Position numbers and translations under genes: made by a program. From the sequence record NC_048047.1: DNA of 64,000 nucleotides. One strand, written 5' to 3'. The notes beneath the pieces were generated by a model. That model was not told the DNA's origin. It did not search any database and saw nothing but the letters and a program-made list of their open reading frames with translations. Shown here piece after piece: positions 16,160 through 54,298 of the stretch. Numbering within the stretch: position 1 is the first letter of the stretch; every line of letters starts with the position of its first letter.

Positions 16160-16171
16160 TCCATGACGCGG

Positions 16172-16200
16172 TTGACGGCGCCGTGTCATCCTGAGATGAT
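16172..16200 (+). promoter_or_regulatory. sigma70-type promoter upstream of NadE-like gene
   Basis: TTGACG(16172-16177)-17 nt-GATGAT. Confidence 0.55.
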
Positions 16201-16219
16201 CCAAGCCTAGCCATAACGA

Positions 16220-16990
16220 GTGACCATGACCGACTTCGACGCCGCTGAGGCCAAGTTCAATAAGCTGATCAAGCGCCTCGCCATCAAGATCGGCCAGTCC
16301 CAGACGCCCGTGCCCGGCTTTGCCGTTGGGCTGTCGGGAACCGACTCGGCCCTGGCCTTCCTGGCGATCAACGCCGCCATCAAAATCGCCTGGGCCGACT
16401 ATGGCCTCAAGCCGCGTCTGATGGGCATCCACTACGTCACCCAGAACCGGCTCCGTCAGGGCACCTTCGAGAAGGTCGCCATCCCGTGGCTGCGTCGCGA
16501 GGTTCCTGAGGCGATCATCCAGGTGATCTCCCCTCCAGGCGGCAATCATGACCAATACCGCTGGGCGGACCTGCATGTGCGCGCCCTGAAGGCGATCGAC
16601 CCGGCGAGCGGCGACCTCACGGCGCTGCCCGTCGAGGAGAGCTTCTGGGTCGCCGGCACGATCAACGCCACAGAGCATGCCCTGGGCAAGTACAGCGTCT
16701 TCGCCAACGCCGTCTCGATCCAGCCGATCCGCTCGATGTGGAAGTCGGAGATCATGGCCCTGGCCAAGCAATGGATGCCCGAGGAGATCGTCGAAGCCGC
16801 GCGCATCCCTGACTGTCTCTGCGGGCGGGACGAGGCGGCGGCCGAGAACATCGAACTGCTCGATGCGGTCCTGCGCAACGACTATGATCCCTCGAAGGTC
16901 GACCGCAAGCTGCTCAAGACCATCATCGACTACATCCGCGTGACCAAGGCCGAGCACGGCTTTCGCGCGCGCATCCCCTACGTGGTCTGA
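16220..16990 (+). CDS. NH3-dependent NAD+ synthetase-like PP-loop ATP pyrophosphatase
   Basis: FAVGLSGTDSALA PP-loop; VAGTINATEHALGKY and IQPIRSMWKSEIMALAK...PEEIV match NadE segments. Confidence 0.7.
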   Translation: MTMTDFDAAEAKFNKLIKRLAIKIGQSQTPVPGFAVGLSGTDSALAFLAINAAIKIAWADYGLKPRLMGIHYVTQNRLRQGTFEKVAIPWLRREVPEAIIQVISPPGGNHDQYRWADLHVRALKAIDPASGDLTALPVEESFWVAGTINATEHALGKYSVFANAVSIQPIRSMWKSEIMALAKQWMPEEIVEAARIPDCLCGRDEAAAENIELLDAVLRNDYDPSKVDRKLLKTIIDYIRVTKAEHGFRARIPYVV

Positions 16991-53694: not shown

Positions 53695-54103
53695 ATAGTT
53701 TGTCCGAAAGGTGACAGCGTCGGCGCAAAAGAAATCGCGTTGACTCCGCAAACCCAGGCCAGCCTTGACGTTGCGCCATTCTCCGCAGGTTTTGCGGTGA
53801 TTGCCCCGGCTATTCGCCGCACGTGTCAGCAAAACCGCCTATGTGACGTCCTGCTTGACATGGCTCAAGTTCCGTGGCACGGGAAAGGCTCGGGCGTGTG
53901 CTCGGATGGAAAGCTCCGCTGTCGGCTTCAAGCCAAGGCCTGGGTGGAACACCAGCGCTAGACCTGCCCGCCGACGCCCTCGACCCCATGCGATCGCCGG
54001 CGGGGGACCACCGCCTTCGCCTGCCACACCCGGCGAGGATCGAAGGCGAGAAACGCCCACCAGAGCCCGCCGCCCTGGTGGGCGTTTTGGTGTCCGGCCT
54101 TGA

Positions 54104-54298
54104 ACTTGACGTCGGGCCATTTCGCCGCCGACTTGACGTCGGATCATTTGCCCGGCCGACTTGATGATCGCCCATTTCGCCTGGACTTGACGCCGGCGCA
54201 TTTCAAATTTGACGCGAGCGCATTTCCTTCCCAAATTTGACGAAAGGCCATTTCAAACTTGACTTGACGTCATTTCATTTCTTGACCTGACGCCATTC
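54104..54298. repeat. array of TTGACG-N6-CATTT units
   Basis: units at 54106, 54133, 54161, 54187, 54209, 54237, 54259, 54264, 54282, plus an outlier at 53765. Confidence 0.9.

Follow-up and report, generated by a model that had tools for sequence, protein, structure and literature searches.

In its predicted structure, the product of gene gp264 from the Caulobacter phage CcrBL9 (genus Bertelyvirus; a jumbo phage with a genome of 322 kb) is a derivative of the nicotinamide adenine dinucleotide (NAD) synthetase NadE along the whole chain, including the C-terminal helical part and with no added domain. Judged by the conservation of its motifs, it belongs to a separate, well-conserved family within the relatives of NadE, here called the SGTDS/DCxCG family after its short PP-loop and the cysteine pair of its P2 loop. 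The gene is found in the 64,000-nucleotide stretch that was analysed (the window, bases 248001-312000 of the CcrBL9 genome), amid a lengthy series of small genes that share its strand and carry no annotation. Tentatively, and with a confidence somewhat short of even, we read gp264 as an amidase with altered second-step chemistry that uses ATP to adenylate a nicotinate nucleotide, either nicotinic acid mononucleotide (NaMN) or nicotinic acid adenine dinucleotide (NaAD); a repurposed enzyme built on the same fold is nearly as likely.

The relationship with NadE is real, if weak, at the level of the primary sequence. An earlier note on this DNA had recognised NadE-like segments in the right order, a reading that stands, as the PP-loop GLSGTDS and the stretch PDCLCGRDE can be read directly in the sequence; the gene is not unannotated, as RefSeq and PHROGs already label gp264 NAD synthetase. 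Specifically, the protein (YP_009810091) carries the label 'NAD synthetase' in RefSeq and 'hypothetical protein' in the GenBank record, and it falls in PHROG 11189 (phrog_11189 'NAD synthetase', E 1e-41). A single-sequence search of the PDB with gp264 returned NadE chains only, with E values of 0.004-0.04 (3p52, 1xng and 3fiu among them). A profile of the gp264 family was likewise significant for NadE chains only, the best match being 3fiu of Francisella (E 3e-9), followed by 3p52 (1.7e-8), 2e18 and 1xng.

The family is large and widespread. Homologues of gp264 comprise 82 close sequences and 114 cluster representatives, many of them located on contigs of 100-600 kb, and several homologue-bearing contigs are classed as complete viral genomes by IMG/VR. 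At 50% clustering, the SGTDS/DCxCG family has more than 100 members, distributed between jumbo phages and Proteobacteria. Residues S39, G40, D42 and S43 of the PP-loop and D198, C199, C201 and G202 of the P2 loop are invariant in 28 homologues that share 37-92% identity, and the short PP-loop and the DCxCG motif co-occur in 75 of the 98 sequences of a wider set; consequently, these motifs are family signatures and not chance features of a single protein. In a maximum-likelihood tree, a long branch parts the gp264 family from E. coli NadE and from the canonical NadE of a 350-kb viral genome of IMG/VR (G011), with the root unresolved, and the phage members constitute one clade (support 99/91) that has a fusion protein at its base. 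The same tree contains, inside the divergent family, a clade of 19 rows (P0143-P0174, about 220 amino acids), most of which have the canonical SGGxDS or are devoid of the cysteine pair; this clade represents either a reversal or the place where the root is located.

The predicted fold leads to the same family. The AlphaFold2 model of gp264, computed from an alignment of 80 sequences, has a predicted local distance difference test score (pLDDT) of 96 and a predicted template modelling score (pTM) of 0.92. When this model was compared with the PDB by Foldseek, the first 31 matches were NadE structures, with template modelling (TM) scores of 0.65-0.69, followed by NcsA and TilS, and against Swiss-Prot every match was a NadE. 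Superposition with VIA-align on 16 NadE entries gave Z scores of 18-19 and a root-mean-square deviation of 2.7-3.0 Å over 206-216 residues, spanning positions 2-254 of the protein.

Much of the catalytic machinery of NadE is kept (Table 1). The PP-loop aligns with that of NadE through a one-residue gap, and T41, which lies among its invariant residues, is present in at least 90% of the sequences. In the GTINATE motif, which aligns with GTDHAAE of E. coli NadE and with the corresponding segments of 3p52, 1xng and 3fiu, the residues N149, T151 and E152 show no variation, and T147 is found in at least 90% of the sequences. The Mg- and ATP-ligand positions of NadE, namely the Asp of the PP-loop, the Glu of GT.N..E and the Lys of L.K, are occupied by D42, E152 and K175, all of them invariant, as are R114 and W115; R114 and D198 likewise fall within ATP/Mg motifs of NadE. 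At the C terminus, the FRARIPY motif is aligned to the C termini of 3p52 and 2e18, and the aromatic residue Y158 occupies the G-F-F position. By reference to the B. subtilis and E. coli NadE structures, we assign the kept positions to the binding of pyrophosphate, of the two Mg ions, of the ribose and of the nucleotide phosphate, and the G-F-F position to stacking on the nicotinic ring.

One departure from NadE concerns the P2 loop. As had been noticed from the letters and is confirmed by the alignments, the region PSAxL...Q.DE is replaced in gp264 by PDCxCGRDE, with the addition of a cysteine pair, so that the NadE pattern P[ST]A.L...Q.DE is absent. The loop is 4-8 residues shorter than its NadE counterpart, and three automatic alignments disagree on its register by up to about two residues. 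It is also the sole stretch of the model with a reduced pLDDT (75-90), as expected for a mobile loop. In the PSAEL motif of human NadE, the Ala and the Leu contact the nicotinic ring and AMP's alpha-phosphate (PMC6946656). If the register is set proline on proline, C199 and C201 would take the positions of these two residues.

Overall, gp264 resembles NadE (PF02540, TIGR00552; 1nsy, 1wxi, 3p52, 6c8q) in the fold, the PP-loop ATP site, the GT.N..E motif, the Lys of L.K, the mobile P2 loop located in the same place, the basic C-terminal motif and the single-domain organisation with no glutaminase. It differs in that it scores below the curated cut-offs, has SGTDS and the short PDCxCGRDE loop, has lost the Asp of YGD, and belongs to a family that coexists with canonical NadE.

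An amidating function is favoured because the NadE fold, the ATP and Mg machinery and the nucleotide-binding C terminus are kept, and because the genomes that carry the gene are exclusively NadV-positive. In this reaction, gp264 would first bind Mg-ATP at the PP-loop site, a step that the sequence, with its NadE ligand positions kept, and the fold both support. Adenylation of the carboxylate of NaMN, in the manner of the Francisella nicotinamide mononucleotide (NMN) synthetase, or of NaAD would probably follow. In the last and least certain step, AMP would be displaced by nitrogen to yield NMN or NAD; here the shortened P2 loop with its Asp-Cys-x-Cys would replace both the PSAxL loop and the Asp of YGD, possibly by way of a transient thioester. 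As for its role, such an enzyme would allow the phage to draw the deamido pool of the host into NAD without needing host NadE, thereby supplementing the nicotinamide route (NadV and NadM-Nudix) and the nicotinamide-riboside route (PnuC and NadR). An activity that converts NaMN to NMN would, in addition, explain why the family is not redundant with canonical NadE.

Such an activity is known from Francisella, in which a NadE homologue acts as an NMN synthetase beside NadM (PMC3376133). This enzyme (3fiu) is the best match of the gp264 profile, and both genomes possess a NadM-type adenylyltransferase. However, its margin over other short NadE proteins is small (compare the E value of 3p52 given above), and, unlike gp264, 3fiu keeps a two-glycine PP-loop and has no cysteine pair at the aligned P2 positions.

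The NAD genes of CcrBL9 provide the genomic context of this reading. In particular, the gene for Nampt/NadV (gp467) adjoins that for a NadM-Nudix adenylyltransferase (gp466), a pair of the NARP2 or KVP40 type, and the genes for PnuC (gp358), NadR (gp357) and a nucleoside 2-deoxyribosyltransferase (gp356) lie in a row of the NARP3 type. gp264 sits 95 kb and 38 kb, respectively, from the NARP2-type and NARP3-type pairs and is linked to neither. Of the partners that the earlier note had envisaged for an NAD pathway, NadV is therefore present, together with NadM-Nudix, and a search of CcrBL9 for PncA and for a second gene of the NAPRTase family (pncB) found neither. Caulobacter vibrioides, used as a control of the search, has no member of the NAPRTase family and possesses NadE; the host therefore depends on the de novo NAD route through NaMN and NaAD.

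Across phages, the association with NadV is complete in one direction. All 17 phage records with a gene of the gp264 family also carry NadV, and so do all six of the metagenomic viral genomes with a completeness of 58% or more; in five of the six, a NadM-like gene adjoins NadV. Of ten near-complete phage genomes with the family, nine contain a NadM-like gene. For comparison, NARP2 has been reported in about 1.1% of phages (bioRxiv 10.1101/2024.02.11.579819).

A number of observations weigh against the amidase. To begin with, the link with NadV is one-way, NadV being found in 1397 phage records against 17 with the gp264 gene. Moreover, NadV is ancestral in the Caulobacter phages without gp264, and every phiCbK-like or Brevundimonas phage without gp264 carries it; the co-occurrence is weak evidence because NadV is far commoner and is ancestral where gp264 is absent. 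At the sequence level, identity between gp264 and NadE is just 13-23%, and the SGGxDS(T) fingerprint of NadE gives way to SGTDS. The Asp of the NadE (K)YGD motif is not kept: it aligns with A162/N163, in a column that across the family holds N, T, G, E, A, D, K or S. gp264 remains under the gathering score of the Pfam model NAD_synthase PF02540 (18.7 bits vs 21; E 1e-3), a cut-off that many of its homologues narrowly exceed, and under the NCBIfam cut-offs of TIGR00552 (20 vs 63.65) and NF010587 (27.2 vs 255).

The coexistence with canonical NadE points in the same direction. The viral genome G011 encodes an intact family member that has both SGTDS and PDCLCGRDE, as well as a canonical NadE that scores 85.8 bits over the whole Pfam model, has SGGIDS, PSGDL and the Asp, and adjoins NadM-NadV. 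Similarly, of five bacterial metagenome-assembled genomes (MAGs) checked that contain the family, at least three encode a canonical long NadE as well. The coexistence in G011 and in bacterial MAGs suggests that the family is not simply redundant with an NaAD-to-NAD synthetase, and it speaks against a plain NAD synthetase. The idea that the family serves as a replacement for canonical NadE was rejected on the same bacterial genomes. Finally, NADase defences yield nicotinamide and ADP-ribose, from which NAD can be rebuilt with no amidation step. The suggestion of the earlier note that gp264 would repair NAD+ against such defences thus finds no support, as their products do not need amidation.

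Several of these points are also accounted for by an enzyme of NadE fold that still adenylates a small-molecule carboxylate, which may still be that of a pyridine nucleotide, and in which the cysteine pair carries out a different second step, the product being neither NAD nor NMN. We hold this to be a serious possibility, to which we would give roughly one chance in three. Such an enzyme could bind its substrate covalently as a thioester and then pass the acyl group to another amine or to a partner, or it could transfer sulfur in the manner of LarE or MnmA. The invariance of C199 and C201 in phage and bacterial members alike is in line with it, together with their placement, by motif register, at the Ala and Leu of PSAxL, near the ring and the alpha-phosphate (PMC6946656). 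The loss of the canonical Asp, the shortened PP-loop, the presence of canonical NadE alongside the family in phage G011 and in bacterial genomes, and the fusion or translational coupling of the bacterial members to a partner protein without relatives also favour it. On the other hand, the phage clade does without the partner, which was not found in CcrBL9; there is no third cysteine for an Fe-S cluster and no conserved cysteine in the partner for sulfur; LarE is outside the top 50 structural matches; and the changes from Ala to Cys and from Leu to Cys are sterically mild and could suit an ordinary amidation. Thus, both the amidating step and the repurposed cysteine-pair enzyme that the earlier note had set side by side remain as the two leading readings, and the tRNA modification that it had included with the latter is unlikely, as an RNA-binding domain is lacking.

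The bacterial members deserve a closer description. In some of them, the NadE-like gene continues into a C-terminal region of about 350 amino acids, the fused proteins measuring 500-690 amino acids; in the others, this region is encoded just behind the gene as a separate protein of 350-400 amino acids, with overlapping stop and start codons. The partner is characterised by the motifs FSFPxWRF and IRNxSxFFGRDRL and by a C-terminal SGxxGDxP, and it is devoid of conserved cysteines. Searches of the partner in Pfam (member by member), NCBIfam, PADLOC, a PDB sequence profile and the Atlas features gave nothing significant. Its AlphaFold2 model has a pLDDT of 90.8, and no significant structural relative of it was found, the best E value being 1.1 by Foldseek against the PDB and 0.05, at a TM score of 0.25, against the AlphaFold Database clusters; a wide VIA search returned TipC2 as the best match, with a Z of 6.2 that is below the noise level. 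No copy of the partner is detectable in CcrBL9. The fusion protein at the base of the phage clade suggests that the phage gene derives from the catalytic half of a two-part system acquired from bacteria. PADLOC assigned no defence-system membership. One of the MAG loci lies in an ordinary stretch of chromosome, among genes for COQ7, DsbB, a secretin and CtpA.

On one bacterial contig, DotM- and TraG-like type IV secretion genes are located near the operon of the NadE-like gene and the partner (L038:10355-14736). Another contig (L037) encodes Sel1 repeats, and two further loci belong to MAGs that bear the labels Alphaproteobacteria and Rickettsiales; the family's bacterial hosts may be intracellular lineages.

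A bolder and rather doubtful extension is that the SGTDS/DCxCG family represents a distinct NadE-derived class. Its cysteine pair, together in bacteria with the partner of apparently new fold, would perform an undescribed transformation of pyridine nucleotides, for example a thioester-mediated one that starts from NaMN or NaAD. Jumbo phages would then have taken over the catalytic half and gained with it a fourth means of manipulating the NAD pool, beside NARP1-3.

Quite improbable, in comparison, is a non-catalytic or regulatory role, in which gp264 would bind ATP, NaAD or NAD as a sensor or a sponge. The scores below the curated NadE models and the alteration of some catalytic hallmarks would fit such a binder. 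Yet the Mg and ATP ligands and the serines of the PP-loop are invariant down to 25-40% identity, which is typical of an active enzyme.

The least probable alternative is an enzyme that modifies tRNA or other nucleic acids, of the TilS, NcsA or MnmA type, in the service of the large tRNA sets of these jumbo phages: NcsA, TilS and TrmU are indeed the next-best folds for gp264 (VIA Z of 12.4, 11.7 and 9.5), but Z falls from 19 for NadE to 12 for the tRNA-modifying families, all 254 residues of gp264 align to NadE, and the RNA-binding domain, Fe-S module or zinc ribbon that accompanies the PP-loop domain in tRNA-modifying enzymes is absent, the conserved cysteines being only two. The gene neighbourhoods complete this picture. 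In the phages XacN1 and Xoo-sp13, the NadE-like gene is followed at a distance of 1-4 genes downstream by a YqeY/GatB-like gene and, a few genes later, by a PTH2-like gene, and in one metagenomic lineage, on a contig resembling alphaproteobacterial phages, PTH2 is the immediate next gene (L006:8772-9164). PTH2 and YqeY are, however, 15-230 kb distant from the NadE-like gene in CcrBL9 and in those large viral genomes in which they occur. In addition, an all-against-all BLAST of the open reading frames up to 7 kb around 19 loci found no neighbour conserved across lineages. A link to tRNA through these two genes was discarded, as their adjacency is confined to the XacN1 type and that single metagenomic lineage. 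Most of the large phages checked encode both the YqeY and the PTH2 families somewhere in the genome. A Pfam search of ten neighbours of gp264 in CcrBL9 yielded no match.

Among known systems, the closest in theme are the phage pathways that rebuild NAD. NARP1 (Adps and Namat) and NARP2 (Nampt and Nmnat) use no NadE, as the earlier note had stated and as is borne out by their description (bioRxiv 10.1101/2024.02.11.579819), and the same holds for NARP3 (PnuC and NadR; PMC13464706). gp264 shares with them the theme of NAD rebuilding, and CcrBL9 itself carries pairs of the NARP2 and NARP3 types; it differs in that NARP1-3 contain no amidation step or NadE homologue and gp264 is none of their defining enzymes. 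A phage-encoded NadE family is found also in gut jumbo phages, in Preiss-Handler clusters pncB-nadD-nadE that were called by KEGG and BLAST annotation (PMC11662467). In those phages nadE is clustered with pncB and nadD, whereas gp264 is solitary, belongs to the cysteine-pair family and is encoded by a phage without pncB or PncA.

A different kind of parallel is offered by LarE, a PP-loop sacrificial sulfur transferase that acts on a nicotinate-derived mononucleotide. The adenylation of a pyridine carboxylate by a PP-loop enzyme with a cysteine at the reaction centre is what is proposed for gp264; LarE is not among the top structural matches of gp264, however, and no evidence points to sulfur chemistry here.

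As far as the literature search reached, there is no description of the SGTDS/DCxCG family as a distinct one, of its presence alongside canonical NadE or of the bacterial partner, whose fold is unassignable. Already known are the 'NAD synthetase' label of gp264 and the phage nadE of Preiss-Handler clusters (PMC11662467). The family acquires its interest from the fact that NAD+ is one of the principal points of conflict between phages and bacterial immunity: since 2024, three pathways by which phages rebuild NAD have been described, none of them with an amidation, and CcrBL9 has two of them plus gp264. If gp264 makes NMN or NAD from the deamido intermediates of the host, the phage would possess an additional route, fed by de novo synthesis instead of salvage. 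Should it do otherwise, the family is mis-annotated as NAD synthetase and would constitute, together with its partner, an uncharacterised two-component system on a well-known scaffold.

Table 1. Position of gp264, its motifs and related loci (window coordinates unless another record or locus is named)
Feature	Position	Strand	Remark
CDS gp264	16226..16990	+	RefSeq ATG start, 254 amino acids; divergent NadE-fold N-type ATP pyrophosphatase
PP-loop GLSGTDS (S39, G40, T41, D42, S43)	16328..16348	+	one residue short of SGGxDS
GTINATE motif (T147, N149, T151, E152)	16655..16675	+	aligned to NadE GT.N..E
K175, invariant Lys of L.K.ev..la motif	16742..16744	+	aligned to NadE phosphate-binding Lys
Shortened P2 loop PDCLCGRDE (invariant D198, C199, C201, G202)	16808..16834	+	aligns with NadE P[ST]A.L...Q.DE
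C-terminal FRARIPY motif	16961..16981	+	basic R249, invariant R251 and P253; counterpart of NadE HKR..P nucleotide-binding motif
Upstream block	16165..16225	+	promoter-like site and weak ribosome-binding region; kept together with gp264
Sigma-70-type promoter-like site	16172..16200	+	TTGACG-17-GATGAT, TG ahead of -10; consensus match only
PnuC-like/NadR-like/nucleoside 2-deoxyribosyltransferase row	CcrBL9 record 224793-226854 (L039:6794-8855)		21 kb ahead of the window
NadM-like, NadV, 198-amino-acid unknown, canonical NadE, 2-oxoglutarate-Fe(II) oxygenase (G011 cluster)	L057, 283638-287387		
Divergent NadE-like gene of G011	L049:6702-7403		far from the canonical NadE cluster
Partner protein	L037:7001-8113; L038:7001-8056		bacterial metagenome contigs; fused in P0097, residues 290-637
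YqeY/GatB-like and PTH2-like genes near NadE-like gene	XacN1 242125-242568, 243756-244595 (L009); also L010, L020		

The region upstream of gp264 shows signs of conservation. The open reading frame has an alternative GTG start at 16220, which would give a protein of 256 amino acids. Position 16172, at which the interval given in the earlier note begins, is not a gene start and corresponds instead to the -35 box of the sigma-70-like match. This promoter-like site agrees with the consensus at nine of 12 positions and is the sole match between 15400 and 17400, where shuffled sequences would be expected to give 0.3. When CcrBL9 is compared with CcrSC, the roughly 65 nucleotides 5′ of the start codon (from about 16165) are near-identical, and farther upstream the two sequences are unrelated, with a different upstream gene. 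That gp264 has a promoter of its own, as had been claimed, is therefore plausible, given the single consensus match and the upstream block conserved in CcrSC, and is not demonstrated. Folding of the 91 nucleotides upstream of the gene revealed no RNA structure significant against shuffled sequences (z 0.45). As to transcription, the sequencing runs that matched the window were all metagenomes and covered just small portions of it. TTGACG boxes recur in intergenic gaps of the window, the positions being 16172, 23213, 25168, 32329 and 43936, in addition to an array at 53765-54264. The boxes at 16172 and 25168 are both followed by similar ATGAT-CCAAG stretches, at a different spacing, and the recurring boxes may belong to one class of phage promoters.

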